Sequence record: MT612989.1
DNA length: 64,000 bases
Reading direction: 5' to 3' (one strand)
Part shown: piece by piece, positions 14,341 to 62,768 of the stretch
How positions within the stretch are numbered: the first letter of the stretch is position 1
Layout: every line of letters begins with the position of its first letter
Translations under genes and position numbers: made by a program
The notes under the pieces: generated by a model
What the model saw: only the letters and a program-made list of their open reading frames with translations
What the model was told of the DNA's origin: nothing
The model's database searches: none

Positions 14341-14425
14341 TAATGTTCTCTCTTTTAGTTAGTTGCGTTGTTCTCTTCAACACCGTCTATATTAATGATT
14401 TTTGAGACCAACGCAACCACTTTTT
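14341..14425 (-). promoter_or_regulatory. Early promoter cassette (AAAAAGTGG-TTGCGT-16-TAATAT ... GAGAGAACATT-ATG leader)
   Basis: -35 at 14411-14416, -10 at 14389-14394; leader shared with other cassettes. Confidence 0.75.
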
Positions 14426-14440
14426 GCATTTTTTTTAAAT

Positions 14441-14659
14441 TTATTTCCAATCAGTGTCATTACCGACGCGAATTAAACTTTGGCGCTTGTTGCAATGTGT
14501 ACACACTCGCTTGCTACCTTTCTTGTATTCCCACGTATGCCAACCAAACATACAAAAGATTTTCTTCAGCCATGGGTTTTGCAGTACAAAAAATAGAACT
14601 GCTGCCAGAAATATAATCATGTTCATTAGTATAGACCTCTCATTAATTGTGGTTTGCAA
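14441..14659 (-). CDS. Small membrane-anchored Zn-ribbon-like protein
   Basis: N-terminal TM segment, C..GWH.W...C..C motif. Confidence 0.6.
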   Translation of the reverse strand: MQTTINERSILMNMIIFLAAVLFFVLQNPWLKKIFCMFGWHTWEYKKGSKRVCTHCNKRQSLIRVGNDTDWK

Positions 14660-15198
14660 GCTTTTAACTTGCGCATTGTGTTGATTATCTTACTTGCATA
14701 CTTCTCAGCACGAGGTTCCCAACGTTTACCTTTGTAGAAACCACCGTTGTAGCTTGCATACACTTCACGCCAATTGTGATGACCTCGAATCTTTTTCCAA
14801 TATTCAAGTTCTTCTATTGCAAGCTGCACTGATACGGTACGATCAGTAAGCAAGATTGTTTTCACGTCTTCAGGGTTATTGAGGTCATACGGACCGAAAT
14901 CTCGACCTGCTTTCTCCCATCGCTTCAAGCGCGTTGTTGCTGTTTTGATGTTGTTTTGCATCAAACCATAGTCTTTCGTTCTATGGTTTATCATCTGCTC
15001 ACCCGCACTTGATTCGACAATTGCGATTGCTGCTAGAGACCAGCTCAAATCATTAAACCAACCGTTCACAAACACTGCACGTACATTATGCCATTGCTTT
15101 TCAGACAGTTCTTGACCTTTAAATTTCACGTGACACTGATTGCTTGCAGTTGCATTAAATGCACACACTGCTAAAAGCAGCGTAAATAACTTCTTCAT
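14626..15198 (-). CDS. SLT-family lytic transglycosylase (T4 Vs.1-like) with signal peptide
   Basis: AIAIVESSAG catalytic Glu, DYGLMQ.N, SYNGG; start MKKLFT. Confidence 0.8.
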   Translation of the reverse strand: MKKLFTLLLAVCAFNATASNQCHVKFKGQELSEKQWHNVRAVFVNGWFNDLSWSLAAIAIVESSAGEQMINHRTKDYGLMQNNIKTATTRLKRWEKAGRDFGPYDLNNPEDVKTILLTDRTVSVQLAIEELEYWKKIRGHHNWREVYASYNGGFYKGKRWEPRAEKYASKIINTMRKLKACKPQLMRGLY

Positions 15199-15228
15199 AT
15201 TTGATCTCTTTGTCGATTTAGCACACGA

Positions 15229-15270
15229 ATGATACAAAAAAGGGCTGACACCTGTCAACCCTTTTTTTTA
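15229..15270 (-). promoter_or_regulatory. Terminator-promoter fusion cassette (GGG-TTGACA-GGTGTCAGCCC-TTTTTT-G-TATCAT)
   Basis: Hairpin 15242-15261 contains the -35 (15253-15258); U-tract forms the spacer; -10 at 15229-15234. Confidence 0.8.
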
Positions 15271-15271
15271 A

Positions 15272-15571
15272 TTATTCTGCACGCGCTTCCCATCGCGCTT
15301 CTTCAAGTGCATGAATTTTTGCCTTGAAGTCATCAAACCCACCAACATGAACACCATCAAAGAACACTTGAGGTAGAGTCTTTAACTCTTGACCAAGTTC
15401 GTGCATTCGTCTTTCAAGTTCTTCACGGTTATGTTTATGTGCGTCTGTAACCTTTTCTTTTGCAAGCGGAATGAAATCGAAAATCAAACCACGTGTTTCA
15501 GCTAGTCGTTTTGCTTTCAAGCAAGGAACGCAGCGAAAATCGCTTTCGTCCCAACCAAATATTTCTAACAA
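15272..15571 (-). CDS. nrdC: Glutaredoxin (T4 NrdC-like)
   Basis: CVPC active site, TLPQVFFDG.HVGGFDD. Confidence 0.9.
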   Translation of the reverse strand: MLEIFGWDESDFRCVPCLKAKRLAETRGLIFDFIPLAKEKVTDAHKHNREELERRMHELGQELKTLPQVFFDGVHVGGFDDFKAKIHALEEARWEARAE

Positions 15572-15572
15572 T

Positions 15573-16697: not shown

Positions 16698-16706
16698 TAT
16701 CTACCT

Positions 16707-19962: not shown

Positions 19963-20467
19963 ATTCATACGTTACTTCAAATTCAAATTCAAAACCGCTT
20001 GGCATATGGTCTGGTTCGATTTCATATACATCTTCATCTTCAGATTCAAAATCAATGATTACCAGCTTTCGATCTGACGCATACAGAACTTGCACATCAA
20101 CGTATTCATCATTAACCCATGCTTTAATAAATTCACCTGATTGAAAAGGAACTTTAACTCGCGTGTTTTTAGTAGTTTCATATTCGAACGTAAGCGTGTT
20201 TTTATCAACAATGCACTCACGACCACCCCACTCAGTTAGATAATGTGAGACTTCAGCTCCTGTAGTAGTAAGACCGTCAACTACAGACAATGCATGACCT
20301 GTATCTGTCGAGACAAACGTGGCTGAATTTAAAGTTGAGTCACTATGAACTTTAATCATATTTTCGTCTACACGACCTGATTCAAAAACGATTGAAACTT
20401 TATCATTTACACGTAGTGGGCGAGTTTTAGTGACTACTTTCTTTTCGTTAGTAAATTTGTAAAACAT
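19961..20467 (-). CDS. Hypothetical early protein
   Basis: ORF behind a promoter cassette. Confidence 0.7.
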   Translation of the reverse strand: MFYKFTNEKKVVTKTRPLRVNDKVSIVFESGRVDENMIKVHSDSTLNSATFVSTDTGHALSVVDGLTTTGAEVSHYLTEWGGRECIVDKNTLTFEYETTKNTRVKVPFQSGEFIKAWVNDEYVDVQVLYASDRKLVIIDFESEDEDVYEIEPDHMPSGFEFEFEVTYE

Positions 20468-20494
20468 AATATAATCTCCAATTATTAAAATGTA

Positions 20495-20580
20495 ATCTCG
20501 TTTCGATGTAGTAATAATAGGGTTTTATTGATTGTCATGCAACCACTAAAACGAAAAAAAGCCCCAATTAAGGGGCTTTT
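20495..20580 (-). promoter_or_regulatory. Terminator plus early promoter cassette (GTGG-TTGCAT-17-TATTAT-...ACATCGAAACGAGAT)
   Basis: -35 at 20537-20542, -10 at 20514-20519, preceded by the repeated AAGCCCC terminator. Confidence 0.8.
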
Positions 20581-20596
20581 TGTGATTCAAGTCACA

Positions 20597-21316
20597 TTAT
20601 TTGTTGATTTCGACTTCTAACTTGAGCATTTCACACTGTAGAACTAGACCTTTGACTTCATCATAGTGCTTGGTTGTTAGTGGTTCACCAGCATCGACTA
20701 CGCTCATTAGTTTCACCTTAGCTCGATTACAGTCTTTAACTGAACCACGTAGGTCACGAACAAGCTCAGGTGATAGAAGCACATCTTCATTAATCACTAC
20801 AGACTCTTCAATCACTTTTTCAGCTTTGATTTCTTTCTTGCTGAATTCTTGTTCTTCGATTACGACGCGATCTTTGATTTCTTCTGCTTCTTCTTTCGCA
20901 AGTTTGATTTGCATTGCAATTCGAGCGCGATCTGATTTATTACATTGCTCAACTAACGGGATGCCGTACTTCAGTTTCCATTGATTGCTCAACGTGTAGT
21001 CTCGTTCGAGCATACCATGCTCACGCTCTGCTGCAATTACAGAGTCAATGACATCACAGAACGGTACTTCAGCATCTGAACGAGGCGTTGGATCTTGACC
21101 GAAATGTACTCGATTCTTAACGATTTCAACGTACACGTTATCATAACGACTTAGAAAACTCGGCGCAGCAAACACGTTCAGCATGTCTTTTTCAGTTTGA
21201 GATAGCACGGGTTTTGCCGCGTCTAAACGATCTGTTGATGCAGTGTCAATAGTGTCAGTACAACCAGTCATTGCTACTGATGCTGCTAGTGCTACGATTG
21301 CGATTAATTTTTTCAT
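20597..21316 (-). CDS. Lipoprotein, paralog of 26854..27555
   Basis: MKK + hydrophobic segment + MTGC lipobox; shared RSD.E.PFCDVI, SNQW...YGI.L.EQCN, DCNRAK and C...KLEVE.NK. Confidence 0.8.
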   Translation of the reverse strand: MKKLIAIVALAASVAMTGCTDTIDTASTDRLDAAKPVLSQTEKDMLNVFAAPSFLSRYDNVYVEIVKNRVHFGQDPTPRSDAEVPFCDVIDSVIAAEREHGMLERDYTLSNQWKLKYGIPLVEQCNKSDRARIAMQIKLAKEEAEEIKDRVVIEEQEFSKKEIKAEKVIEESVVINEDVLLSPELVRDLRGSVKDCNRAKVKLMSVVDAGEPLTTKHYDEVKGLVLQCEMLKLEVEINK

Positions 21317-21327
21317 GATGTTCTCTC

Positions 21328-21588
21328 TTATTTGTCAAATTTGATGTAGAAGTATTGTGGGCCATTAGTTCCTCGTGGCACGCAAGTCAAGTACGGTTGC
21401 ATACCTTCGGGACACTGAGCAAAAAATTCAGGGTTAAGACGCTGAACAACGTACCAGAATTCACTGCGTTTTTCTTCCCACTCTGCTAATGCTTTCTTTC
21501 TGAATTTCATTGGCTTTTGGTGAAGCACTACATATGCGCGTCGATGTAGCCAATGATTTTTAATGTGAAGAGTTACTTCATCTTTCAT
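21328..21588 (-). CDS. Hypothetical early protein
   Basis: ORF behind promoter TTGACA-17-TAATAT. Confidence 0.7.
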   Translation of the reverse strand: MKDEVTLHIKNHWLHRRAYVVLHQKPMKFRKKALAEWEEKRSEFWYVVQRLNPEFFAQCPEGMQPYLTCVPRGTNGPQYFYIKFDK

Positions 21589-21609
21589 GATATTGTTCTC
21601 TCGTTAGTT

Positions 21610-21648
21610 GTTGAGTGACATATTACAGCCACTCAACGTTGTTGTCAA
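21610..21648 (-). promoter_or_regulatory. Sigma70 promoter with the -10 in the loop of an 8-bp inverted repeat
   Basis: -35 TTGACA 21643-21648, -10 TAATAT 21620-21625; GTTGAGTG (21610-21617) / CACTCAAC (21630-21637). Confidence 0.75.
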
Positions 21649-21652
21649 CTAT

Positions 21653-22882
21653 TTAGTTGAAATTAATTGCTTGACCGTCGTCTACATCACGTAGCACATC
21701 GTATTCTTCGATGAATTGAGCCATTTTACAGTTCTTATCACCGACTGTGAAGCTGCTTTGTTCATTCATGTATTCAACGGCAGCAAGATAATCTTGATAT
21801 TCTTGGTCATCTTCGTCATACCATTCGCTGAACTTCTCGTGCAGGTCTTCGCGGCGTAGAGTCAGGCGAGTTGTACGCTCGACTTTGAGTTGAACTGATT
21901 CTTCAAAATACCAATCTGGTTGTAGATCTTCGATGATGTCTGCCATTTTACGAAGACGTTCAGCGTCTGCACACATGTCGTGACATTGACCAGAAGTCAT
22001 AGCAGGCATAAATTCAAGGTTATTCACCAAGAAGAAGCGAGACGTCCATTTACCACCGATATATGCTTCAGCAATCTTTTGACCGAAATCGTTTTCTTTC
22101 ATGTCAACAATCGGGTGAGTTTCAGTCAACCATTCTGAGCGTTCGAACTGCGTATCAAATTTAACCATGTCAACTTGCAGTTCGATTAAACTATCAATGA
22201 TTTCTTTCTTCTCATCTTCTGTTTTCGTATCGTCTTTTTCAAGTTCAATACGCGCACGTTCGATTTGAAGTCTACCACGAGCTGAAATCATTTCAAGATC
22301 AGATGTAGATTTTGAATATTTCGCTACAAATTCGTCAACTTCTTCTGTAAACGTGTATGTCTTCGCGTCTTCACCCCAACCCGTAGTATACGTACCATCG
22401 AGAATCATTTGCTGATAAATCTCTTCGTGAATTGCCATTTTCGCAATCAGACTAACGCCGTGACACGTTTTCACACGCAACGCACCGCTATGTTCCATGT
22501 CTTGAAGTTGATTCATATCTTCGATTTCATCAATTTCCATGTAATCGTGATATTCGTTGTAGTCGTCAAGCGACTTCCCTTCTGGAACACGATTCGGCAT
22601 ATAAATGTTGTTAATCGCCTTGAGCGTCAACGATTCCATATCAGCGTCTTCGAATTCATAATTGTTGTAGTCAGCATACTTAGCTAGAAGCGGGTAACCA
22701 ATGACTTTAAACGTATCCCACGGGTAACACTTACTTCCCATTAGAACATTGCTGTAGAGCGATTTCGAGCGCAAGTTGTAATGCTGATCAAACGTGTCCA
22801 TGACTAAGAAGAACACACGCGCTTTCTGACCTTCTAGAATAGGTGTACGTGAGATTGCGCAAGTTGTGTTGAATGAACCCAT
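21653..22882 (-). CDS. Hypothetical 409-aa acidic protein
   Basis: Long ORF, N-terminal MGSFNTTC motif; own promoter TTGCAC-17-TAGAAT at 22923-22951. Confidence 0.8.
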   Translation of the reverse strand: MGSFNTTCAISRTPILEGQKARVFFLVMDTFDQHYNLRSKSLYSNVLMGSKCYPWDTFKVIGYPLLAKYADYNNYEFEDADMESLTLKAINNIYMPNRVPEGKSLDDYNEYHDYMEIDEIEDMNQLQDMEHSGALRVKTCHGVSLIAKMAIHEEIYQQMILDGTYTTGWGEDAKTYTFTEEVDEFVAKYSKSTSDLEMISARGRLQIERARIELEKDDTKTEDEKKEIIDSLIELQVDMVKFDTQFERSEWLTETHPIVDMKENDFGQKIAEAYIGGKWTSRFFLVNNLEFMPAMTSGQCHDMCADAERLRKMADIIEDLQPDWYFEESVQLKVERTTRLTLRREDLHEKFSEWYDEDDQEYQDYLAAVEYMNEQSSFTVGDKNCKMAQFIEEYDVLRDVDDGQAINFN

Positions 22883-22934
22883 TATGTTGTCTCCATTTGA
22901 GCGATTTTAAGTTGATGTAAGTATTCTAATTGAA

Positions 22935-23261
22935 TTAAGCGAAGTGTGCAAGCACCTTTTTACCAAATTCGTTAGATTCTTCAAGAGAAGCAGCACCTGC
23001 ACTCATTGTTAAGAATTGATCTGTCATTGTTTGCATAAGAATAATGCGGTCGAAATCAGCAACTGTCGCTTCAGCGATAATAGCTGCCTTACCAGTCACG
23101 ATAGTTGAAATTAGATTGAATCGACGAGCGACATCTGAACCTTCCATAGCATAAGAACCGTTACGAAACTTATATTGACCTTGATTTGTTTCGCGCTCGA
23201 AGTTGAAACCTTCAACAACTTTAGTTTTTTGAGCTTTAGTCATGTTAGTAGTTAGTTGCAT
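22935..23261 (-). CDS. Hypothetical early protein
   Basis: Directly behind cassette 23262-23340. Confidence 0.75.
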   Translation of the reverse strand: MQLTTNMTKAQKTKVVEGFNFERETNQGQYKFRNGSYAMEGSDVARRFNLISTIVTGKAAIIAEATVADFDRIILMQTMTDQFLTMSAGAASLEESNEFGKKVLAHFA

Positions 23262-23340
23262 AATGTTCTCTCTTTGTTTTCGTATCCCGTTTCGATGTAG
23301 ATATAATACAAAAAAAGGGTTGCCGAAGCAACCCTAAATT
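23262..23340 (-). promoter_or_regulatory. Terminator-promoter fusion cassette (GGG-TTGCTT-CGGCAACCC-T7-G-TATTAT-...ATCGAAACG...GAGAGAACATT-ATG)
   Basis: cUUCGg hairpin 23317-23334 contains the -35 (23326-23331); -10 at 23303-23308. Confidence 0.85.
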
Positions 23341-23368
23341 TACGATTTTTAGTGATCAATGTCACGTT

Positions 23369-24862
23369 TTACGCTGTTCGAATCTTCTTGGCGATTTTCC
23401 ATTCACCTTCGTTGATAAAATCAGCTTGCACGTCAGACAGTTTACGAGCTTCTTCAAGTGAGAAGTCAGCAACTGTTACACCGTTTTCGAAGATTGTCTG
23501 CATCACGCTCTGAGGGTGTACGCGATTGTCGTAATCTTCAGTAGAGAACGTCACGTAACCACGAGCTGCTGGGTTCGGATTTTCTGCATCGACTGCAATC
23601 AAATCTAAGAAACCTGCTTTTGATGCTTTTGTTGGGTCAGTCTTCGGCATTTTGAACACACTAACGTATTCGCCGTTGATGATCGCCGCTGACATTTTCA
23701 TTGCAAAACGTTGAGTATCACGGTCAAGTTGCTGAAGCAAACCACCACCCATACCGAATGCAATGTTTTCTGCCGACCAACCTTTACTTTCCATGTAAGA
23801 TAGAATTCGACGAATTTCTTCGATGTTCACGCCGTCGCCTTGAATGATACGGTAACTAGGGTGTAGAACTTTGTAACCCTTGCTGTTGATTGTGTAACCA
23901 ACGTTCTTAGCAAGAATTTCAAGACCTTTCATTACTACATCTACAGGTACACCAGAGTCAGGACGAGCAACAAACGTACCGCCTTTACTGATGATTAACT
24001 CTTTGAAACGACCAGTCGAGACACGATTCATTGCTGCTTCGTAGTCGTAGCTGTCCATTACACAAGCGTATAGAGCTGCGCCCCATTGCTCGATAGAGTT
24101 CAAGAATGCTTGATCTTCGCCAAATTCTTTGTAGATTGTAGTTGTTGAGTGTTCACGTGCAGGGATAGAGAATCCCGCAATGAAGTCTTCAACATCTTCA
24201 GCGTAAAGCTCTTCAACTGCAACAAGTGCTTCTACATTGTCAGTTCCCAAGAAGTTTTTCAAGTGAGCTGCGCCGCCAATAGCTGCTGATTCGCCACTTG
24301 ACACACCACGAGAACCGAAGTCGTGAAGTTTAAACGGCTCTTGTTCTGCAATGCGTTCATCATCAACCGTTTTCTTCATGAATTCACGAATGATTTTCTT
24401 CACTTCGAACGAGATCGTTGCTACAGTTGTCGGGTACCAAATCGCACGTAAGATAAACGTTTCAAGATAACCAGGTAGCCAACCGAAACGTGGATCTGTG
24501 TTCTCAATCGTCAAGATAGGGTGCTTAACTGGTACTACAGTACCTTCTTTTACCGCACGAATCTTAATAGGCAGTTTGCCGTTCAGTTCGTTAACGATGA
24601 TTTCCCAACCCTTGTCATTGAAGACTTCAGAACCGAAGTGCTTTTTGAACAGACGTTTCGCACGCTTGACATCGTTCATTGCAACACCTTTTTCGAGAAT
24701 ACGACACATGTATGCCATACCATCGATCATAATTTTGTCGAACTTGCCGCCCCGGCTTTCAACGTAATATTGACTGTACTCTAAACCACGAGGGAATTGA
24801 GACCAGTGTGAAACTTTGTAGCTGTCTGTTGCGATTGCGATATTTTGATTAAGATTAAGCAT
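23369..24862 (-). CDS. nadV: Nicotinamide phosphoribosyltransferase (Nampt)
   Basis: TDSYKVSHW.Q.P, LHDFGSRG, SIPAREHST, DSYD, RPDSG, IIQGDG, FGMGGGLLQ...RDT..FAMK. Confidence 0.95.
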   Translation of the reverse strand: MLNLNQNIAIATDSYKVSHWSQFPRGLEYSQYYVESRGGKFDKIMIDGMAYMCRILEKGVAMNDVKRAKRLFKKHFGSEVFNDKGWEIIVNELNGKLPIKIRAVKEGTVVPVKHPILTIENTDPRFGWLPGYLETFILRAIWYPTTVATISFEVKKIIREFMKKTVDDERIAEQEPFKLHDFGSRGVSSGESAAIGGAAHLKNFLGTDNVEALVAVEELYAEDVEDFIAGFSIPAREHSTTTIYKEFGEDQAFLNSIEQWGAALYACVMDSYDYEAAMNRVSTGRFKELIISKGGTFVARPDSGVPVDVVMKGLEILAKNVGYTINSKGYKVLHPSYRIIQGDGVNIEEIRRILSYMESKGWSAENIAFGMGGGLLQQLDRDTQRFAMKMSAAIINGEYVSVFKMPKTDPTKASKAGFLDLIAVDAENPNPAARGYVTFSTEDYDNRVHPQSVMQTIFENGVTVADFSLEEARKLSDVQADFINEGEWKIAKKIRTA

Positions 24863-24919
24863 TGTATGGCTCCCATTTTATGCTGTTAAAGTTTCTCGAA
24901 TGTTCGAGTGTAAGTGTCA

Positions 24920-25423
24920 TTAAAAACGAGCTTTAAATGACATAGTTACGACTGGCACCCAGATATCAGAACCCATCAACAACCCAAGCTCTGCACCTAA
25001 GTTATCAGTAGCCCAATAAGTAACTGATGGCTGAATCGCAGGTAGAATACCGAGATCATAAACTTCAGTATAACCAGTCGCTAGACCAAGAAATAAATCA
25101 TAGTCAATTTCTTTACTTGGTGTGTATGTGAAGTGATAACCTGCAACAAAACTACGCTCATAGAAGCTGTTTTCTAAAGTCATAACTTCCCAATTTTTAT
25201 ATCTAACACCAATTGCATTGTTTGTTTCATTGTACTCTTTAAAAACAGACGTTTTACATTTATCTGCTAAATCAGGACAATATCCGTCACCTGAAAGGTG
25301 GTAAGACCACCCACCTAATCGAACCTGAACATCGTCAATGAACGTAGTCTGTTCGTTAGTAGATGCATTTGCGCTTGCAACGCTAGATAAAAGCAATAGT
25401 GATAGTGCAGTAAGTTTTTTCAT
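24920..25423 (-). CDS. Small outer-membrane beta-barrel, PagP-like
   Basis: Sec signal with ANA cleavage site, GGWSYH...YNE.NNAIG...NSFY...G.ATGY, alternating strands, terminal Phe; promoter TTGCAA-17-TATAAT at 25451-25479. Confidence 0.55.
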   Translation of the reverse strand: MKKLTALSLLLLSSVASANASTNEQTTFIDDVQVRLGGWSYHLSGDGYCPDLADKCKTSVFKEYNETNNAIGVRYKNWEVMTLENSFYERSFVAGYHFTYTPSKEIDYDLFLGLATGYTEVYDLGILPAIQPSVTYWATDNLGAELGLLMGSDIWVPVVTMSFKARF

Positions 25424-25486
25424 AATGTCTTCCTCTTATTGAATGAATACATTATATTATTCTTTTTCTCACATTGCAAGCTTTTT

Positions 25487-26020: not shown

Positions 26021-26047
26021 TATGTTATTCCTTTCATGTTAAAATCG

Positions 26048-26055
26048 TATTTATA
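26048..26055 (-). promoter_or_regulatory. T4-type late promoter TATAAATA
   Basis: Exact consensus (TATTTATA on +), 27 nt upstream of ATG 26020. Confidence 0.8.
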
Positions 26056-26060
26056 CATGA

Positions 26061-26846: not shown

Positions 26847-26853
26847 GTTTTTC

Positions 26854-27555: not shown

Positions 27556-27608
27556 TCTAATACTCCTAATATCTCTAACTTCACTAAAACCACTAATACT
27601 ACTAAGAT
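27555..27608. repeat. Six imperfect 9-bp tandem repeats with invariant CTAA core
   Basis: ctctaatac tcctaatat ctctaactt cactaaaac cactaatac tactaagat. Confidence 0.75.
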
Positions 27609-27626
27609 GAGACGGAATTTTTCCGC

Positions 27627-28313: not shown

Positions 28314-28394
28314 AATGTTCTCTCTTTTTGTTTAACTCGTTAGCTGTTGTGACTATAATAATAAAAGTGGCTGCATAGCGCAACCACTTTTTTC
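28314..28394 (-). promoter_or_regulatory. Terminator-promoter fusion cassette (AGTGG-TTGCGC-TATGCAGCCACTTTT...TATTAT)
   Basis: Hairpin 28363-28391, -35 at 28378-28383, -10 at 28355-28360, GAGAGAACATT-ATG leader. Confidence 0.8.
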
Positions 28395-28396
28395 AA

Positions 28397-30791: not shown

Positions 30792-30809
30792 AATTTTCTC
30801 TTTCTGTGT

Positions 30810-30917
30810 TTCGTTTCGATATACACATAATAGGTAAATTCTAAACACTCGTCAAGAACTTTTTCAAATATTTTCTTCAGACCTAAAAAAGCCCCGATTA
30901 AGGGGCTTTTATTAACG
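30810..30917 (-). promoter_or_regulatory. Terminator plus early promoter cassette (TTGACG-17-TATTAT-...ATCGAAACG)
   Basis: -35 at 30850-30855, -10 at 30827-30832; 30871-30917 is a 46/47-identical copy of 51712-51758. Confidence 0.8.
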
Positions 30918-34649: not shown

Positions 34650-34725
34650 AATGTTCTCTTTAGTCGTTGTCGTTTCGATGTAGCTATAATACAAAAAAGG
34701 GCTGACATCTGTCAACCCTTTTCGA
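34650..34725 (-). promoter_or_regulatory. Terminator-promoter fusion cassette (GGG-TTGACA-GATGTCAGCCC-TTTTTT-G-TATTAT-AGCTACATCGAAACGAC)
   Basis: Hairpin 34699-34718, -35 at 34710-34715, -10 at 34686-34691. Confidence 0.85.
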
Positions 34726-36265
34726 AAAGTTTTTTGATTTTGTCTATAAGTGACGGAGGCACGATAACTGGCTTTTCTTCTTCAGTGTAGCCAATAAATG
34801 GTCTGCGTGCTAAACTGTAGCAGTCATTGCACAGAATCATACCAACACCATCACTGTACCCGTCAGGGTGTCCGCAGATTTCACACTTCATAGAACAACT
34901 CCGACATCTTTCAAGAAAACTTTATTACCTTTGTATTCGAAGTATTTTCCGCGCTTACGATCTTCATGAATCGGTTTAAAGCGAACAATACCAATACGAC
35001 CTGTATCGTTGTTTCGTAATGCATACGCGATGCGTTTTACATTACGTGAAATCTCAGCAATCACCAATTGCTTGTTACCGAGATTCACTTTTGTATAAGC
35101 AAACGGTACGTGAAACCATTGATAGCTCATTTCATTTCCCGATGCATTAAAGAACGTAGTTTTCATCTATACCTCTGAGAGCGTCTGTGCGTCGATTTGA
35201 GACATTTTAAGATTAACGGGACCACATACAAATCCTTTGTCTGTTCCGCCCCATATGCCTACGCTACGTTCGTTAGAGCCGCACATACAGAACATATATG
35301 CTTTGCCTTCGATTAATTTCGGAGGTGGCTTGCGAATTGTACCGAATACACCGTGAACTTCTTCGACTGTATGATATGCAAAATCGAAATTAGGAACCAT
35401 CTGTACGATTCTAGATTCTCGAAATCCCCAATTGGGTTCAGTCTCAGTGACTTTATAATACGCGCCGATTTGATATTCGTTACCAGAAGCGTCTTTGATT
35501 ATTTCTTCGGGTTGATAATTTGACATGATTAATCTTCACAATTTTCAAGTTCAATTCGAAGCTCGTTTGTTAGAACGACATCTTCCCAATTTGTTTCAGG
35601 ACAACATACAAACCATTTACCGTCTTTAAACATGTAGTTGTATTCTTGCTCGGGGATGTTGTCGATGTAAATCGTAAGGTCTTCACCACGATCACGAGCG
35701 TAGAAAACGCTATCTTCGATTGTACCACTAAGTGAGCTACATTCACCTTGATCGATAAGTGCATTGATTTCGTTTTCTGTTCGGTAGAACTGAAGTAGAT
35801 TGTCAGCAACACCACCATCCCATAAACCACCATCCCAGTGACAGTAGATTGAACGAACTTGACCGTTTTCTTGTGTAATGCTAATGCTTGAATTTGTGCT
35901 CATTAAATTGCTTCCCATGTTGTGATTGTTACTTCGTGTGCTGGTTCCCATTCATACTGCTCTAAGCATTCTTGAACTGAGTACCAATAAGGGTCGATTG
36001 CGTCTGATAAGATCCAATAACCGACTAGCTCTGGGTCAATATCTCGCTCTTCGCATGAATCTTGACTTAACCAAGATGTTTTGAATTTAGTATACGTGCC
36101 TTGTCGTATCTCTATGACATACTTCGCTTGTGGCACGCCCTTTCTATCTGCAAGATTGACAGTATCAATATGCGAGTAGTTGTGCTTGATTTGATCAAGC
36201 TGCTCTTCAGTGAATACCATAAGTACCTCAATATCCCAAGGAGCTGAAACAGTGTCGCCAGACAC
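34712..36265 (-). other. Hypothetical CDS run (34712..34891 CxxC/CxxC peptide missed by the track, 34888..35166, 35167..35526, 35529..35903 with IYCHWDG motif, 35903..36220 approx.)
   Basis: Tiled ORFs; IYCHWDG is a widespread phage motif of unknown function. Confidence 0.6.
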
Positions 36266-36273
36266 TCAGCTCC
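36240..36273. other. GC-rich bulged hairpin in an intergenic gap
   Basis: GGAGCTGA/TCAGCTCC outer stem, 4-nt bulge, GTGTC/GACAC inner stem, 4-nt loop; no U-tract. Confidence 0.6.
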
Positions 36274-36294
36274 GCAGGAACGCCGATTTTTGTA

Positions 36295-38305: not shown

Positions 38306-38418
38306 AATGTTCTCTGTATCTCGTTTCGATATAGCTATATTAGGGGTATTCGTCATTTAATGCAACCACTTTTTCAAATTATTTTATTCAAACCGAAAAA
38401 AAGACGCCGAAGCGTCTT
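38306..38418 (-). promoter_or_regulatory. UUCG terminator plus early promoter cassette (AAAAAGTGG-TTGCAT-17-TAATAT-...ATCGAAACGAGATACAGAGAACATT-ATG)
   Basis: Terminator 38401-38418, -35 at 38360-38365, -10 at 38337-38342. Confidence 0.8.
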
Positions 38419-44155: not shown

Positions 44156-44409
44156 AATGATTCTCTCTTCAGTTGATGAGTTCATTATACGTATCTGTTT
44201 GGACAATGCAACCACTTTTTTACATATTCCACACACCAATATCTTCAGGCATCAATCCGTTCTCGACTGCTTTGTGATAATAGTTCTCGTGCTTGACAAT
44301 ACCACGCTGTAGATAATGACGATTCGCTTTGATGAACTGATCGGCAGCTTCTATGCTGTCTTCATGCGGGTGTTTGAGTTCAAACGGCGCACCGTTGTCA
44401 ATAAGCAAG

Positions 44410-46465: not shown

Positions 46466-46537
46466 AATGTTCTCTCTGTATCTCGTTTCGATGTAGCTAT
46501 AATACGCAAAAAGGGTCGCCGAAGCAACCCTTTTTTT
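46466..46537 (-). promoter_or_regulatory. Terminator-promoter fusion cassette (GGG-TTGCTT-CGGCGACCC-TTTTT-GCG-TATTAT-AGCTACATCGAAACGAGATACAGAGAGAACATT-ATG)
   Basis: UUCG hairpin 46513-46530, -35 at 46522-46527, -10 at 46499-46504. Confidence 0.85.
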
Positions 46538-46539
46538 AG

Positions 46540-51589: not shown

Positions 51590-51758
51590 AATGTTCTCTC
51601 TTAGTTAAGTCGTTTAAGATTGTGTATCTCGTTTCGATGTAGATATAATACTAAATCACCATTCACCACGCAACCACTTTTTGCAAAAAAACTTAAACTT
51701 TTTTCTTTTATTTTTCTTCAGACCTAAAAAAGCCCCAATTAAGGGGCTTTTATTAACG
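51590..51758 (-). promoter_or_regulatory. Repeated terminator plus early promoter cassette (GTGG-TTGCGT-17-TATTAT-ATCTACATCGAAACGAGATAC)
   Basis: -35 at 51668-51673, -10 at 51645-51650; terminator block duplicated at 30871-30917. Confidence 0.8.
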
Positions 51759-57713: not shown

Positions 57714-57715
57714 GA

Positions 57716-58957: not shown

Positions 58958-58960
58958 ATC

Positions 58961-59447
58961 TTATCCCTTGTAAGCTGCTTCGATTTTCTCAATGATTTGA
59001 CCGTAAGGCAAACCACTCTTGTATAGCTCATTGAACATTTTGTTTACGTTGTTCGCGACTTCACGCATAACATTAGCTGAAGCAGCAGTCGTTTTGTGAC
59101 TGATTTTAACACCAGTACGACCGATGAATAGCTTTACTTCGCTCTTATCAGCAGTCAAGATTTTAAGCCAAAGTGAATCGTGATTGATTTTGCTGCGTGT
59201 GATTAAGTTCATAATGTTCTCTCTCGTTTCAATAAAGCTATTATCGGCTATTGCTGGTGGAAGTGTCAAGCACTTAGTAGTTAATTTTACCAGCGCGACG
59301 TAAGTCAGATTGAGCTTTCATGACTTTTGCAGAAAACGCGTAATCATCATTTGCATTTGATTCAGCAATAAGGTCGTAGAACTGGTCTTCTGTCATTGAC
59401 ATAACAAGTTCAATTGCGTCGATTTTAGTAGCGTTTGCGTAAGTCAT
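58961..59447 (-). other. Two small early CDS (58961..59212; 59274..59447, 57 aa, missed by the track)
   Basis: Each has a GAGAGAACATT-ATG leader; second translated by hand (MTYANATKIDAIEL...). Confidence 0.65.
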
Positions 59448-59520
59448 AATGTTCTCTCTGTATCTCGTTTCGATAAGAGAATAATACAGTAAGTGGCTAC
59501 ATCACGCAACCACTTTTTGT
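59448..59520 (-). promoter_or_regulatory. Hairpin-promoter fusion cassette (AAGTGG-TTGCGT-GATGTAGCCACTT-ACTG-TATTAT-...ATCGAAACGAGATAC)
   Basis: Hairpin 59491-59515 with two G-U pairs, -35 at 59504-59509, -10 at 59481-59486. Confidence 0.8.
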
Positions 59521-59532
59521 ACTTTTTTGCTT

Positions 59533-59940
59533 TTATAGTGAATTAATCAAGAATTTTAACCATGCTTTACGCACAAATACAAAATCAATATCATCGGCAT
59601 CTTCAAATACACGCGATACGCTATGTACAAATGCACTAAGCTTGTTTTGAAAAATCTCGTTGAGATATTCAGCTTCAGTTGAAGTCAATTCACGACCAAA
59701 TACAGCTACAGGATTAGCTTGTAGATGGTCACAGAAAGCTTCGCCTTTATCTTTAATGATACGCATAGCCTTTTGTTGAGCAAGAACGCCAAGCTTGATT
59801 TCGACGTGTTCATCTAAAATATGACACGTGTAAGCGTCTTCATCGCTTAAAATCGCGGTATTTTGACGTAATTCCAGTGCTTTTTCGCTAATTACACGGC
59901 GAATTTCAGTGTTATCAAGGAAATCTGGTAGAATTTTCAT
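59533..59940 (-). CDS. Fourth member of the YTC/AFVH/RKAWLK family
   Basis: ALEL...AYTC...AFVH...RKAWLKF. Confidence 0.8.
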   Translation of the reverse strand: MKILPDFLDNTEIRRVISEKALELRQNTAILSDEDAYTCHILDEHVEIKLGVLAQQKAMRIIKDKGEAFCDHLQANPVAVFGRELTSTEAEYLNEIFQNKLSAFVHSVSRVFEDADDIDFVFVRKAWLKFLINSL

Positions 59941-59944
59941 AGTT

Positions 59945-60262
59945 TTATCCCTTATCTTGGTACATACGTACAGTGTTAGAAGCAAAATCGATGTCTAAAT
60001 CGTAGTATTCGCCGACTTGAAAGAAATTATTCTTGGCATTAATCTCGTTAATGCGCTCAATACGTAGCAGTGTATAAGTCATACCACTGTCAATTGTGTA
60101 GTCTTGACCTTCAATCATACCGTATTCAGCAGCTAGATAAATGCGAACTGAAGACAAAGCATTACCGTTCTTCGCGTACATGCTTTTATCAAGCTCATGG
60201 CGCATACCACCACGCGGGTGACAAGAAACAGTAAATGACTTAGTTTCGTTGATGATTTGCAT
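59945..60262 (-). CDS. Hypothetical early protein (start MQIIN)
   Basis: Directly behind cassette 60263-60340. Confidence 0.7.
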   Translation of the reverse strand: MQIINETKSFTVSCHPRGGMRHELDKSMYAKNGNALSSVRIYLAAEYGMIEGQDYTIDSGMTYTLLRIERINEINAKNNFFQVGEYYDLDIDFASNTVRMYQDKG

Positions 60263-60340
60263 AATATTCTCTCTAGTCGTTGTCGTTTCGATAAAGCTAT
60301 AATACAAAAAAGGGCTGCATAGTGCAACCCTTTTCTTCAA
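60263..60340 (-). promoter_or_regulatory. Terminator-promoter fusion cassette R (GGG-TTGCAC-TATGCAGCCC-TTTTTT-G-TATTAT)
   Basis: Hairpin 60312-60330, -35 at 60322-60327, -10 at 60299-60304. Confidence 0.85.
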
Positions 60341-61416
60341 TTATTTTTCTTGCGGGCGTTCTTTGGCATATGAGCACAGCACTCATCAAGAAAACCCTTT
60401 CTCTTAGCAGAAGAATAAGCCGCACTAGAGTTTTTCTGCCAATCACTTCTAGTCTTATATTTCAATGCATCTTCTTTAAGACGTTCAAGTGTCCAGTATC
60501 CATTAGGTTTTCTTTGTAATTCCATATGAGCACAGCACTCATCAATTATACCCTGATTATAAGCATTACTACAACCGCTAGAGTTTTCCCTCCATTCTCG
60601 GCGAGTCTTATATTTCAATGCATCTTCTTTAAGACGTTCAAGTGTCCAATATCCATTAGGTTTTTGATGCATTGTCATATGAGCATAACACTCGTCAAGT
60701 AATCCTTTCTTATGAGCAGCAGCGTAAGCACTGGGTGACATTTTCCGCCACTCAGAACTTGTCTTGTATTTCAACGCATCTTCTTTAAGACGTTCAGGTG
60801 TCCATTTTAATGTTGAACTCCCCAATGCACCAGCTTTAGAACGATTTAAAATAATCCATCCATTGTTTCTGTAGTACTCAATGTGTTCTTTCTCTGCAAT
60901 TTGCGCCAGTTCTTGATTCATATACTCAGTCAATTGCTCGAACTTGACGTTTTCAATGCCATGACGTTCGATTAGGTCTATGACCTGAGTTGTTTTCTTT
61001 CGATGAGAACTAAAGCGTTGCTTAGTATCGTAAGTCAACCCAATGTAAATCTCATTACCTGCATAGATTCGATATATACAGCGAGAAAATGAGTTTTTAG
61101 TTGATGGCTTCATATGAGCACAACACTCGTCAAGTAATCCTTTCTTATGAGCAGCATCATAAGCACTGCATGACATTTTCTGCCAATCACTTCTAGCCTT
61201 GTACTTCAATGCATCTTCTTTAAGACGCTCTAACGTCCAATATCCATTAGGTTTTTGAAGCATTGTCATATGAGCACAACACTCGTCAAGTAATCCTTTC
61301 TTATGAGCAGCAGTATAAGCACTGCATGACATTTTATTCCATTCATTTCGAGTCTTGTACTTCAATGCATCTTCTTTAAGACGCTCTAATGTCCAATATC
61401 CGCGTGGTTTTCTCAT
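60337..61416 (-). CDS. GIY-YIG endonuclease flanked by 52-aa repeats (2 N-terminal + 3 C-terminal)
   Basis: CIY-RIYAGNE-IYIG, R...H, E and N catalytic positions present; WT.ERLKEDALKYK...DEC.AHM x5; start MRKPRG with GGAGG SD. Confidence 0.85.
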   Translation of the reverse strand: MRKPRGYWTLERLKEDALKYKTRNEWNKMSCSAYTAAHKKGLLDECCAHMTMLQKPNGYWTLERLKEDALKYKARSDWQKMSCSAYDAAHKKGLLDECCAHMKPSTKNSFSRCIYRIYAGNEIYIGLTYDTKQRFSSHRKKTTQVIDLIERHGIENVKFEQLTEYMNQELAQIAEKEHIEYYRNNGWIILNRSKAGALGSSTLKWTPERLKEDALKYKTSSEWRKMSPSAYAAAHKKGLLDECYAHMTMHQKPNGYWTLERLKEDALKYKTRREWRENSSGCSNAYNQGIIDECCAHMELQRKPNGYWTLERLKEDALKYKTRSDWQKNSSAAYSSAKRKGFLDECCAHMPKNARKKNN

Positions 61417-61440
61417 AATGGCCTCCAAATCAAAGTCAAT

Positions 61441-61482
61441 AGAATACAAAAAAAGGGCTGCATAGCGCAACCCTTTTCTTCA
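61441..61482 (-). promoter_or_regulatory. Terminator-promoter fusion cassette S (TTGCGC-18-TATTCT)
   Basis: Hairpin 61455-61473, near-identical to R and T. Confidence 0.8.
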
Positions 61483-61483
61483 T

Positions 61484-62704
61484 TTATTTTTTGACTCGTT
61501 TTGGCATATGACCACAACATTCATCAAGTATACCTTGTATTCGAGCAGCTTGATACGCACTAGATTTCTTCTGCCATTCTCGCCGAGTCTTGTACTTCAA
61601 TGCATCTTCTTTTAGACGTTCGGTTGTCCAATAACCACTCGGCTTTCTTGTAGTAGTCATATGAGAACAACATTCATCAATTATACCACGTTTTCGAGCA
61701 GTTTGATACGCACCACTAGAGTTCTTGTACCATTCATTTCGAGTTTTGTATTTCAATGCATCTTCTTTTAGACGTTCAAGTGTCCAATAACCACTCGGCT
61801 TCTGTCTTGTAGCGGGCATATGACCACAACATTCATCAATTATACCACGTTTTCGAGCAGCATCATAACCACTAGAGTTCTTCTGCCATTCATTTCGAGT
61901 TTTGTATTTCAATGCATCTTCTTTAAGACGTTCGGTTGTCCAATGCAACATATCACCACCAAGACTACCAGCCTTAGAACGATTCAAAATAACCCAATCG
62001 TTATTCGCGTAGTACTCAATATGTTCCGCCTCTGCAATCTGAGCAAGTTCCGGCTCCATGTAGTCAGTCAATCGCTCGAAAATCACATTCTCAATCCCAA
62101 CTCGCTCTATTAAATCTACAATCTGCGGCGTTCCTTTACGATGGTCGTGGAATCGTCTATCAGTATCATACGTCAACCCGATGTAAATCTCATTACCAGA
62201 ATATATACGATAGATACAACGCTTTGATAAATTCTTGACATTTGTCTTCATATGAGAACAACATTCATCAATTATACCACGTTGTTGAGCGGCACTATAA
62301 GCGCCACTAGAGTTCTTGGCCCATTCTCTGCGAGTCTTGTACTTCAATGCATCTTCTTTAAGACGTTCAAGTGTCCAATAACCACTCGCCTTCCTTGTAG
62401 TAGTCATATGAGAACAACATTCATCGATCAACCCATGATAATGAGCGGCACTATAAGCGCCACTAGAGTTCTTGTGCCATTCATTTCTGGTCTGGTATTT
62501 CAAAGCATCTTCTTTAAGACGTTCAAGTGTCCAATAACCCCTCGGCTTTACCAGTGCTGTCATATGACAGCAGCACTCATCAAGCAATCCTCTCTTATGA
62601 GCAGCATCATAACCACTACGTGATTTCTTCTGCCATTCACCACGAGTCTTGTACTTTAAAGCGTCTTCTTTAAGTAACCCAAGCGTCCATTTAATTCTAG
62701 CCAT
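61484..62704 (-). CDS. GIY-YIG endonuclease flanked by 52-aa repeats (3 + 3), paralog of 60337..61416
   Basis: CIY-RIYSGNE-IYIG, RRFHDH, E, N; six repeats; start MARIKW. Confidence 0.85.
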   Translation of the reverse strand: MARIKWTLGLLKEDALKYKTRGEWQKKSRSGYDAAHKRGLLDECCCHMTALVKPRGYWTLERLKEDALKYQTRNEWHKNSSGAYSAAHYHGLIDECCSHMTTTRKASGYWTLERLKEDALKYKTRREWAKNSSGAYSAAQQRGIIDECCSHMKTNVKNLSKRCIYRIYSGNEIYIGLTYDTDRRFHDHRKGTPQIVDLIERVGIENVIFERLTDYMEPELAQIAEAEHIEYYANNDWVILNRSKAGSLGGDMLHWTTERLKEDALKYKTRNEWQKNSSGYDAARKRGIIDECCGHMPATRQKPSGYWTLERLKEDALKYKTRNEWYKNSSGAYQTARKRGIIDECCSHMTTTRKPSGYWTTERLKEDALKYKTRREWQKKSSAYQAARIQGILDECCGHMPKRVKK

Positions 62705-62728
62705 AATATTCTCTAATTCAAAAACTGT

Positions 62729-62768
62729 AGAATACAAAAAAGGGCTGCATAGCGCAACCCCTTTCTTT
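62729..62768 (-). promoter_or_regulatory. Terminator-promoter fusion cassette T (TTGCGC-17-TATTCT)
   Basis: Hairpin 62742-62760, near-identical to R and S. Confidence 0.8.

Follow-up and report, generated by a model that had tools for sequence, protein, structure and literature searches.

A putative fusion of early promoter and terminator hairpin, very probably of the PeSL type, in the KVP40-like Vibrio phage vB_ValM_R11Z

Promoter-early stem-loops (PeSLs) of T4-like phages are composite elements in which a sigma-70 promoter is combined with a stem-loop (Arbiol 2010, PMC2839356; Comeau 2014, PMC4122927). In phages RB49 and phi1, five subclasses have been described, some with stem-loops overlapping the -35 or the -10 box, and lacZ fusions demonstrated both terminator and promoter activity (PMC2839356). 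For KVP40 and nt-1, the consensus consists of a stem-loop, A3-4 G3-loop-C3 T3-4, and a promoter, TTGYVH-N17-TAWWAT (PMC4122927).

The DNA analysed here (the window) is the final 64 kb of Vibrio phage vB_ValM_R11Z (MT612989.1), a T4-type, KVP40-like jumbo phage (Schizotequatrovirus); positions 20000-40000 match that record at 100% identity. It holds 18 cassettes, nine of which carry a hairpin fused to the promoter. The best reading of these nine is that of early promoters with the -35 box inside a terminator hairpin, and the R11Z cassettes are very probably PeSL-type composite regulatory cassettes. The element itself is already known: it is the PeSL cassette of T4-like phages, published for the close relatives KVP40 and nt-1 in 2014, and the composite promoter/terminator reading that a preliminary description had put forward matches the published PeSLs (PMC2839356, PMC4122927).

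The pattern GGTTG-N6-9-RRCCMYTT has exactly nine matches in the window, all on the minus strand, i.e. the gene strand (15239-15260, 23314-23333, 28365-28385, 34696-34717, 46510-46529, 59491-59511, 60309-60329, 61452-61472 and 62739-62759). Chance would yield a mean of 0.02 (maximum 1 in 100 dinucleotide shuffles), which bears out the nine minus-strand copies of the preliminary description. Folded as RNA, they reach -14.3 to -19.5 kcal/mol (z -4.3 to -6.3), equalled by 0 of 200 shuffles. Every copy has TTGNNN within the 5′ arm and, as had been described, a -10 hexamer of TATTAT (six copies), TATTCT (two) or TATCAT (one) after a spacer of 17 nt (six copies) or 18 nt (three: 15258, 34715 and 61470). 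Straight after the stem, 5-7 consecutive T follow in 7/9 window copies, irrespective of pairing with the upstream A-run; copy 23332 has T7 despite a near-absent A-run. The run is short in copies 28384 (TTTTA) and 59510 (TTAC), the very two singled out before (hairpins at 28363 and 59491). There are three stem types, with GGG/CCC and GUGG/CCAC subfamilies, and the loop GCTAT is common to several copies.

Cassette 62758 (62705..62773, minus strand, as are all cassettes below) has its -35 box, TTGCGC (62757-62752), in the 5′ arm, a 17-nt spacer made up of the 3′ arm and the T-run, and the -10 hexamer TATTCT (62734-62729), followed by the 5′ UTR and the ATG of the gene ending at 62704; it folds at -18.0 kcal/mol (z -4.6) and scores 63.6 bits with model R1. 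Cassette 61471 (61417..61483; -35 TTGCGC 61470-61465, 18-nt spacer, -10 TATTCT 61446-61441; -19.3 kcal/mol, z -5.7) and its gene are a tandem duplicate of this unit. The top-scoring R1 match (73.5 bits) is the cassette at 60263..60336 (-35 TTGCAC 60327-60322, 17-nt spacer, -10 TATTAT 60304-60299; -18.7 kcal/mol, z -5.3), with the conserved 5′ UTR ATCGAAACGA... The GTGG/CCAC stem variant occurs in cassette 59510 (59448..59532; -35 TTGCGT 59509-59504, -10 TATTAT 59486-59481; -14.4 kcal/mol, z -4.5), whose U-tract UUACUG is weak, and in cassette 28384 with its short T-run (28314..28396; -35 TTGCGC 28383-28378, -10 TATTAT 28360-28355; -17.3 kcal/mol, z -5.6). The two cUUCGg loops noticed earlier are those of cassette 46528 (46466..46539; -35 TTGCTT 46527-46522, -10 TATTAT 46504-46499; -17.5 kcal/mol, z -4.9) and of cassette 23332 downstream of nadV (23262..23368; -35 TTGCTT 23331-23326, 7-T run, -10 TATTAT 23308-23303; -14.3 kcal/mol, z -4.3). 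In cassette 34716 (34650..34729; -35 TTGACA 34715-34710, 18-nt spacer, -10 TATTAT 34691-34686; -18.5 kcal/mol, z -6.2), the upstream gene has its TGA stop (34714-34712) within the -35 box and the 5′ arm. The ninth cassette is found at 15199..15271 (-35 TTGACA 15258-15253, 18-nt spacer, -10 TATCAT 15234-15229; -19.5 kcal/mol, z -6.3).

Five cassettes had been reported to lack the right arm (14411, 20537, 38360, 44206 and 51668); they lie at these positions and fail to fold, with -2.3 to -8.8 kcal/mol and z near 0 except for cassette 20543 (z -2.7). Four further cassettes of the same family, 30855, 59269, 25479 and 21649, were found in addition. In four armless cassettes, a separate terminator stands just upstream of the promoter. 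Cassette 51674 (51590..51752) has the terminator GCCCCTTAATTGGGGC plus T6 ahead of the family promoter AAAAAGTGGTTGC...TATTAT, a layout that is equal in KVP40, nt-1 and 6E35.1a. Cassette 38366 (38306..38416) has the family promoter and the terminator GACGC-TTCG-GCGTC plus T7; its layout is conserved in KVP40 and nt-1, and a terminator of this type is absent from the 130 nt inspected in 6E35.1a. Cassette 30855 (30792..30911) pairs TTGACG-17-TATTAT with GCCCCTTAATCGGGGC plus T6, and in cassette 20543 (20468..20596; promoter GTGGTTGC...TATTAT) the terminator GCCCCTTAATTGGGGC plus T7 has its end some 12 nt upstream of GTGGTTGC. The latter cassette also retains, across the -35 box, a weak stem (-8.8 kcal/mol) that may be a decayed fused arm. 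Hairpin-less cassettes are located at 44156..44219 (AAAAAAGTGGTTGC...TATAAT; -2.3 kcal/mol, z +0.8; no terminator in its gap), 14340..14440 (AAAAAGTGGTTGC...TAATAT; -3.1 kcal/mol, z 0.0), 59213..59273 (cassette 59269; TTGACA-18-GATAAT and the family 5′ UTR) and 25424..25486 (cassette 25479; AAAAAAGCTTGCAA-17-TATAAT). Cassette 21649 (21589..21652; TTGACA-17-TAATAT) is a different PeSL subclass: its hairpin (-18.2 kcal/mol, z -4.9) encloses the -10 rather than the -35 box, has no T-run, and is kept with an altered stem in KVP40 and nt-1.

Since the 5′ arm is the same in fused and armless copies and the difference is confined to the spacer, the hairpin is an add-on to the promoter. The plain spacers seen in hairpin-less members of the family also agree with the fused promoter-terminator reading. 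The four separate upstream terminators, in turn, show a terminator followed by a promoter to be the general plan, of which fusion is a compaction.

Across R11Z, KVP40, nt-1 and 6E35.1a, the fused design is present in 30 sense-strand copies in total, and none was found in a 50-kb structural-gene control. The nadV identity to the window is 94% for KVP40 and 90% for nt-1, and ranges from 80 to 94% among the lineages that keep the hairpin at orthologous sites. Orthologues of cassettes 28384 (in KVP40, nt-1 and 6E35.1a), 23332 (in three other lineages) and 34716 (in KVP40) retain the stem with changed loops, and the nt-1 orthologue of 28384 carries a compensatory G-C to C-G change. In a 14-copy set, 95.2% of cells are paired, as opposed to no more than 64.5% when partners are slid. 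Three stem pairs show double changes, and the covariation score is 0.257 versus 0.164 in shuffles (0/500 as high), values that reflect few independent events because much of the covariation separates the GGG/CCC from the GUGG/CCAC subfamily. Internal stem mismatches on the sense strand are all T.G or G.T and never A.C, G.T and A.C having been given equal penalty, just as the preliminary description had it for the minus-strand reading; the near-universal U.G wobble may go back to a single ancestral cassette instead of having been selected in every case. Loops measure 3 to 5 nt and are UUCG in 9/30 copies, UACG in one and UGCG in one. Stem conservation, sense-strand G.U pairs and UUCG loops support a hairpin under selection in the sense-strand RNA and followed by a terminator-type T-run. 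The earlier proposal of selection on RNA structure rather than on a DNA cruciform is supported by sense-strand wobble, UNCG loops and compensatory changes, and that of a fused promoter and intrinsic terminator is supported at the sequence level by fold energy, orthologue compensation and conservation in four lineages.

Each cassette lies between two early genes of one strand. Its 62-107 bp comprise an A-rich tract that contains the upstream stop codon and is likely an UP element, then a sigma-70 early promoter of the form (G/T)GGTTG(C/AC), 17-18 nt, TAT(T/C)(A/C)T, and a short conserved 5′ UTR with a Shine-Dalgarno sequence before the ATG. In nine of the 18 cassettes, the otherwise free spacer is complementary to the -35 region. 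An upstream-derived transcript would fold an 8-9 bp G+C-rich hairpin with the -35 box in its 5′ arm and a U-rich tail formed by the remaining spacer and the -10 hexamer. This is how an intrinsic terminator is built. The new transcript would begin downstream of the -10 box and would not contain the hairpin. If host RNA polymerase that comes in from upstream terminates, wholly or in part, at the U-tract and sigma-70 holoenzyme re-starts about 7 nt past the -10 box, each small gene block would therefore be its own early unit until AsiA blocks -35 recognition. AsiA is encoded at 5467-5766 (Pfam PF09010, E 4e-46), and AsiA of KVP40 is an inhibitor of the E. coli RNA polymerase (PMC2988021). By analogy with the tested RB49/phi1 PeSLs, we infer promoter activity and termination for the R11Z cassettes; their start site, AsiA shut-off and insulation of modules are predictions, and occlusion by the terminating polymerase or its hand-over to re-initiation, also raised earlier, is speculative. 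No transcriptome for the KVP40 group is among the papers that a literature search retrieved. The sequencing runs that share a high proportion of words with this DNA look like assemblies of DNA with contigs broken at the repeats, and coverage in the sole RNA-labelled run is limited to part of nadV.

The core hairpins (-10.0 to -15.2 kcal/mol, 4-7 U in the next 9 nt) can be set beside the stand-alone terminators of the window (-6.7 to -11.3 kcal/mol, 6-8 U). Termination may be weak or partial at some copies because their U-tracts are interrupted (UUACUG in 59510; UUCGCG and UUCUUG in KVP40 copies). Such poor U-tracts would also suit an RNA hairpin without a terminator role, i.e. one that is read through and either protects the 3′ end left by nuclease processing or serves as a site of pausing or attenuation, with units separated post-transcriptionally. 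The sense-strand RNA signatures fit any RNA hairpin role, and the -10-enclosing class is conserved with altered stems and no T-run at all. We nevertheless regard this alternative as unlikely, given the T-runs of seven window copies, energies and tails that match the phage's own stand-alone terminators, and an RB49 PeSL stem-loop that cut lacZ read-through about as much as rrnB T1 (PMC2839356).

A DNA-level palindrome, be it a dimeric-regulator operator over the -35 box or a cruciform or homology site for recombination and module shuffling, would make the RNA hairpin a mere by-product. A mediating role in recombination and in the formation of mini-circles has been proposed for PeSLs (PMC2839356, PMC4122927), related phages have assemblies that break at cassette repeats, and cassette type differs before near-identical genes: KVP40 and nt-1 have a hairpin-less TTGACG...GATAAT promoter before the orthologue of the gene after 46528, and in KVP40 the orthologue (96% identical) of the gene after armless 59269 is preceded by a fused cassette. 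Homology breaks in comparison with relatives fall in cassettes 2-3 times as often as uniformly expected, yet junctions at cassettes show them no more often than other gene junctions do (Fisher p 0.11-0.89). Moreover, G.T-only mismatches weaken a DNA cruciform but stay paired in RNA, UUCG loops are an RNA feature, and variable loops with compensating arms are unlike a protein site with fixed half-sites, all of which renders this explanation very improbable; a recombination role for the whole cassette repeat is compatible with the terminator-promoter reading, not opposed to it. That the copies are functionless recent duplicates of one cassette with a chance inverted repeat is scarcely credible: 61471 and 62758 do lie within a tandem gene duplication and several copies share one loop, but three stem types exist, orthologous hairpins persist with loop turnover and compensatory changes, and T5-like vibriophages and an Aeromonas phage show the design again, with -10 and 5′ UTR sequences specific to each lineage.

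Among known systems, the terminator-promoter cassettes of R11Z share with lambdoid morons the single gene with its own promoter and terminator (PMC2839356); in morons, these two do not overlap and a conserved repeated flanking cassette is lacking. A fused design was also seen in T5-like vibriophages (Achelous group, Demerecviridae) and in Aeromonas phage 2L372D/X, where a minority of the repeated TTGCTT-N17-TATAAT cassettes carry AAAGGGTTGC-TTCG-GCAGCCC-TTTT. These early-promoter cassettes have the same hairpin over the -35 box and the T-run as spacer, whereas the phage families are unrelated to R11Z and the -10 box (TATAAT) and 5′ UTR are their own; judged by titles and abstracts, the PeSL literature searched includes nothing on a T5-like phage.

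In the PeSLs of T4 and PST, the early promoter follows the stem-loop, as in R11Z cassettes 51674, 38366, 30855 and 20543 (PMC4122927), but the stem-loop lies just upstream, unfused, and the -35 box is TTTACW. RB49/phi1 PeSLs resemble those of R11Z in the A/T-rich tract with the upstream stop codon, the sigma-70-like -35 and -10 boxes, the stem-loop with G-T pairs, the Shine-Dalgarno sequence and the ATG (PMC2839356). They differ in their polyG/polyC stems, their near-perfect TTGACA/TATAAT promoters and the position of the stem-loop, mostly between the -35 box and the -10 box or over the latter rather than over the -35 box; the reporter evidence is limited to these cassettes, whose stems differ from those of R11Z.

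Closest are the PeSLs of nt-1 and KVP40, genomes in which copies orthologous and paralogous to the R11Z cassettes are present. The 2014 text is not explicit on the -35 box within the stem, on sense-strand G.U-only mismatches or on compensatory changes, and it counts some TGCTT-containing copies as middle-promoter PmSLs (PMC4122927); in R11Z, TTGCTT lies 17 nt from the -10 box and reads as a -35 box. The published consensus fits the R11Z copies, both sets are found between small ORFs of hyperplastic regions and have a Shine-Dalgarno sequence and ATG at their end, and there is no essential difference between them, R11Z being outside the set of the 2014 paper (PMC4122927).

Nine cassettes on the minus strand of the window, at 62758, 61471, 60328, 59510, 46528, 34716, 28384, 23332 and 15239–15260, combine an early promoter with a terminator-like hairpin such that the −35 element lies inside the 5′ arm of the stem and the U-tract doubles as the promoter spacer. 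The preliminary description had listed nine such hairpins on this strand, and the pattern GGTTG-N6-9-RRCCMYTT indeed returns exactly nine matches, all minus, compared with an average of 0.02 in dinucleotide shuffles. Every copy carries TTGNNN followed by TAT(T/C)(A/C)T after 17 nt (six copies) or 18 nt (three), the −10 element being TATTAT in six, TATTCT in two and TATCAT in one; both the spacing and the variants agree with what had been read by eye. An annotated ATG on the same strand lies 27–71 nt downstream of the promoter (29–41 nt in 7/9), and the stop codon of the preceding gene is found 0–45 nt upstream. A-runs of 3–9 nt abut the 5′ side of the stem in 8/9 copies, with a mixed tract (AAATTTA) taking their place at 23332. 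At 34712–34714, the TGA stop of the upstream gene (34712–34891) falls inside TTGACA, the −35 hexamer, and also inside the 5′ arm of the hairpin, meaning that coding sequence, promoter and terminator overlap; the KVP40 orthologue shows the same arrangement.

As RNAs, the nine copies have folding energies between −14.3 and −19.5 kcal/mol (z −4.3 to −6.3), a stability matched by 0/200 shuffles. The five cassettes that had been described as lacking the right arm are likewise present on the minus-strand reading and fold like shuffles, with the exception of 20543 (−8.8 kcal/mol, z −2.7), whose residual fold may be a decayed arm.

A census of every minus-strand intergenic gap of at least 40 nt places these cassettes in a wider context. 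The window corresponds to positions 182832–246831 of the record (annotation; Straboviridae, Schizotequatrovirus), and its segment 20000–40000 shows 100% identity to Vibrio phage vB_ValM_R11Z (MT612989.1, record positions 202831–222831), a KVP40-like T4-type jumbo phage, and is matched by 50 related vibriophages. Beyond ~5 kb, almost every gene is encoded on the minus strand, and the majority are small ORFs of unknown function that together form a hyperplastic early region. Besides the nine fused cassettes, the gaps contain four members of the promoter family whose intrinsic terminator stands apart, upstream in the same gap (51674, 38366, 30855 and 20543), five with neither fused hairpin nor separate terminator (44212, 14417, 59269, 25479 and 21649) and five stand-alone terminators, giving 18 cassettes across ~50 kb of small ORFs. 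Gaps measure 62–107 nt in the fused form versus 111–163 nt where the terminator is separate. The census therefore identifies terminator-then-promoter as the general plan and the fused form as its compact version. The 5′ arm, (G/T)GGTTGC, is identical between fused and armless copies, the difference being confined to the spacer: the promoter sets this arm and the spacer has evolved as its complement. Together with their SD and ATG, the cassettes constitute dispersed repeats of ~60–100 bp (repeat families D2, D3, D5, D6, D8 and D10). A stand-alone terminator repeat, AAAAGCCCCTTAATTGGGGCTTTTTT, is present in four near-identical copies with shared flanks (9471–9517, 20541–20587, 30871–30917 and 51712–51758), three of which lie upstream of armless promoter cassettes. 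Downstream of the −10, fused and armless copies of all four lineages (R11Z, KVP40, nt-1 and 6E35.1a) have a conserved leader in common, (AGCTAC)ATCGAAACGAGATAC...AGAGAGAACATTATG (e.g. 46466–46498, 23262–23302 and 38306–38340), which beyond the SD could serve as a translation signal or be recognised by an RNA-binding regulator, for example RegA. A possible internal promoter, a perfect TTGACA-16-TATAAT, lies at 45774–45801 (minus) within the coding sequence of the gene at 45626–45895, shortly before the endonuclease V gene.

How closely do the fused hairpins resemble intrinsic terminators? Each is a G+C-rich hairpin with a short loop and a U-tract, located downstream of a gene on the same strand. 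Core stems of 8–9 bp with loops of 3–5 nt reach −10.0 to −13.9 kcal/mol and are followed by 5–7 U within 9 nt, or −10.0 to −15.2 kcal/mol and 4–7 U in the widest tally, this tail being made of the remaining spacer and the start of the −10; for the stand-alone terminators of the window, core energies range from −6.7 to −11.3 kcal/mol, with 6–8 U. At 23332 there is a T7 with almost no complementary A-run, whereas 59510 combines a good A-run with a poor T-run, so the two runs vary independently, which favours a U-tract combined with a UP element over a simple lengthening of the palindrome. The short T-runs reported for two copies are real: 59510 and 28384 have weak, interrupted tails, as do several KVP40 copies (UUCGCG, UUCUUG), and all of these are probably leaky as terminators. 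Because a transcript started by the cassette begins past the −10 and lacks the hairpin, the latter can act only on RNA arriving from upstream. Generic promoter and terminator scans were dropped in favour of custom ones: overall, they did no better than on shuffles, and they list only 5/9 hairpins because the A-U extension consumes the T-run.

Conservation was assessed by comparing the homologous regions of KVP40, nt-1 and 6E35.1a (nadV identity to the window 94%, 90% and 81%, respectively) and one further KVP40 early region, with a 50-kb structural region of KVP40 as control. All four lineages have fused cassettes, 30 copies in total, and these lie on the gene strand. The covariance model of the fused cassette (R1), built from 14 copies, recovers 9/9 window copies on the minus strand and has no match in the structural control region, and no Rfam family matches at gathering score. 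At orthologous sites, the loop differs and the stem is retained. Before the gene at 28313, for instance, R11Z has GUGGUUGC-GCUAU-GCAGCCAC, KVP40 and 6E35.1a keep this stem around the loops UCUAU and GCAUU, and nt-1 has GUGCUUGC-ACUAC-GUAAGCAC, i.e. a double change from G-C to C-G. In the 14-copy alignment, 95.2% of cells are paired compared with at most 64.5% when partners are slid, double changes affect three pairs, and 0/500 shuffles reach the covariation score. The model-based alignment A3, which mixes sense matches with palindromic antisense shadows, was for this reason left out of the pair counts. With G·T and A·C given equal penalty, the internal mismatches of true copies are all T·G or G·T on the sense strand and never A·C, as had been noted for the minus-strand reading, and the loops are UUCG in 9/30 copies, UACG in one and UGCG in one. 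Strand bias of the wobbles, UUCG-type loops and compensatory changes thus mark a sense-strand RNA hairpin, in line with the selection on RNA structure originally proposed. The pattern of compensatory pairing is what would be expected of a structured RNA under selection, albeit with few independent events, since most of the covariation separates the GGG/CCC and GUGG/CCAC stem subfamilies; the common U·G wobble may have been inherited from one ancestral cassette.

These features also bear on other readings of the cassettes. That the hairpin serves in RNA without terminating transcription is unlikely: T-runs, wobbles restricted to the sense strand, UNCG loops, compensatory changes and conservation across lineages all speak against it, as they do against the two readings that follow. 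That it is instead a DNA operator or recombination site is very unlikely. Regarding recombination, homology breaks fall in cassettes 2–3 times as often as uniformly expected in three genome comparisons, and in these comparisons cassette junctions carry them at no higher rate than other gene junctions do (Fisher p 0.11–0.89); we therefore do not claim statistical support for a recombination role at the given divergence. That the cassettes are functionless duplicates is hardly credible given this evidence. Overall, a composite promoter-terminator of the PeSL (promoter-early stem-loop) type is very probably the best explanation.

Individual loci are compatible with exchange at the level of whole cassettes. 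The cassette at 46528 is fused in R11Z, and KVP40 and nt-1 have an armless TTGACG...GATAAT before the orthologous gene, and the upstream genes differ. Conversely, 59269 is armless in R11Z, and KVP40 has a fused copy ahead of a gene that is 96% identical. Finally, the block 59915–62731, comprising two paralogous genes with a fused cassette before each, is absent from KVP40. These tandem paralogues (60337–61416 and 61484–62704, minus), also absent from nt-1 and 6E35.1a, contain internal repeats ~153 nt apart and a weak GIY-YIG match just under the Pfam cut-off, their other sub-threshold Pfam matches looking repeat-driven; the cassettes before them have TATTCT and an atypical 5′ UTR. Together, the two genes may represent a mobile endonuclease-like insertion. 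An apparent 4.7-kb insertion in phage Va3 turned out to be an artefact in which a paralogous cassette match had been joined to the main alignment of a collinear region.

The anatomy, conservation and RNA-type covariation of the composite promoter-terminators are observed; initiation, termination, start site and an AsiA-dependent switch are what we infer. Early in infection, the host σ70 holoenzyme would initiate at each cassette, and polymerase arriving from the upstream unit would meet the hairpin and U-tract, resulting in full or partial termination. Termination and fresh initiation at each cassette would thus make each small gene block its own unit, served by an individual copy of the standard promoter, 5′ UTR and SD. 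An AsiA anti-σ70 homologue is encoded at 5467–5766 on the minus strand (PF09010, E 4e-46), and KVP40 AsiA inhibits E. coli RNA polymerase (PMC2988021), so the −35-dependent cassettes should shut off as AsiA accumulates.

A literature search for a KVP40-group transcriptome found none among the papers retrieved, and almost all sequencing runs containing R11Z sequence are presumed to be DNA. A single RNA run, from seawater, shares 6% of words, its coverage being limited to part of nadV. In runs X1, X2, X3 and X18, contigs break at cassettes and depth is doubled over 23182–23372, which indicates a repeat rather than transcription. The joint 27626/28304 in X1 and X3, of which one side is only 24 nt, is taken to be a match to the shared 5′ UTR/ATG repeat. 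Intergenic degenerate 9/18-nt tandem repeats at 27554–27626, TTAG-rich on the minus strand, are covered ~fourfold by contigs from related-phage runs and are thus probably another dispersed repeat. In practical terms, the cassettes explain assembly breaks at ~75-bp repeats in KVP40-like phages and offer annotation a reliable marker of where early transcription units lie in KVP40-like jumbo vibriophages, a group with several candidates for phage therapy in aquaculture.

Scanning IMG/VR for AGGGTTGC-N4-5-GCRRCCCTTT matched 76 stretches, KVP40 and VH7D among them, and revealed two further groups with the hairpin exactly 17 nt before TATAAT: the Achelous group of T5-like vibriophages (Demerecviridae, Thalassavirus; L018:1767–1815, L075:7240–7290 and 10320–10368, and L066:1880–1928) and Aeromonas phage 2L372D/X (L064:3534–3582 in 2L372D). 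All share the order A-run, GGGTTGC-TTCG-GCAGCCC, T-run and TATAAT at 17 nt, with lineage-specific −10 and 5′ UTR in the T5-like vibriophage and Aeromonas phage cassettes. In the Achelous group, the fused arm is a minority variant, present in ~3/18 members of a group-specific TTGCTT-N17-TATAAT family. This distribution points to convergence or exchange between phage families. Convergence is plausible since the C(UUCG)G loop arises directly when a TTGCTT −35 is followed by CGG; co-infecting phages of different families may also have exchanged the design, given a stretch of ~37 nt that differs at one position between a KVP40 copy and an Achelous copy. Of the eight PeSL papers in the literature searched, none is about a T5-like phage by its title or abstract.

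Single-molecule work has found that RNA polymerase often stays on the DNA after intrinsic termination and diffuses, and that the retained bacterial enzyme restarts at nearby promoters (PMC6978380, PMC6978322, PMC10372574). These recycling studies lend some footing to the earlier suggestion that terminating polymerase could hand over to re-initiation. In a fused cassette, polymerase would be released inside the promoter that follows, either at the −10 or next to it, and could therefore be passed along an array of cassettes from unit to unit. It is a tentative and rather unlikely proposal that the fusion of terminator and −35 is a recurrent coupling of termination to re-initiation, beyond a compaction peculiar to T4-like phages; if true, early genes could gain an edge in capturing host polymerase.

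The fused cassettes are PeSLs, which have already been published, and their recognition in R11Z is an independent rediscovery in a close relative. PeSLs were defined in RB49/phi1 (Arbiol et al. 2010; PMC2839356) as an A/T-rich tract with an upstream stop, a σ70-like promoter, a stem-loop with G-T pairs, an SD and an ATG. In lacZ fusions, they acted as strong promoters and their stem-loop lowered read-through about as well as rrnB T1; promoter and terminator activity and the formation of mini-circles have been demonstrated only in RB49/phi1 (PMC2839356). A later study (Comeau, Arbiol and Krisch 2014; PMC4122927) described PeSLs in the nt-1/KVP40 pair as well, whose stem-loop consensus A3-4 G3-loop-C3 T3-4 and promoter consensus TTGYVH-N17-TAWWAT both suit the copies described here. 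The R11Z cassettes share every sequence feature of PeSLs, and the fused terminator-promoter reading is supported at the sequence level and by the published work on the family. A second class of hairpins in the window, at 21589–21652 (−18.2 kcal/mol) and 10513–10577 (−16.6 kcal/mol) on the minus strand, encloses the −10 rather than the −35, lacks a T-run and corresponds to the RB49 PeSL subclass that 'overlaps the -10'; KVP40 and nt-1 both retain the hairpin at 21649, its stem being altered. While little is added to the biology beyond the PeSL papers, this phage group now provides explicit comparative evidence for a stem maintained through compensatory changes specific to the sense strand. A further addition is that the promoter dictates the 5′ arm, which the spacer evolved to match, and the T5-like vibriophages, where the design recurs, offer a modest new lead on insulated expression units in compact phage genomes.
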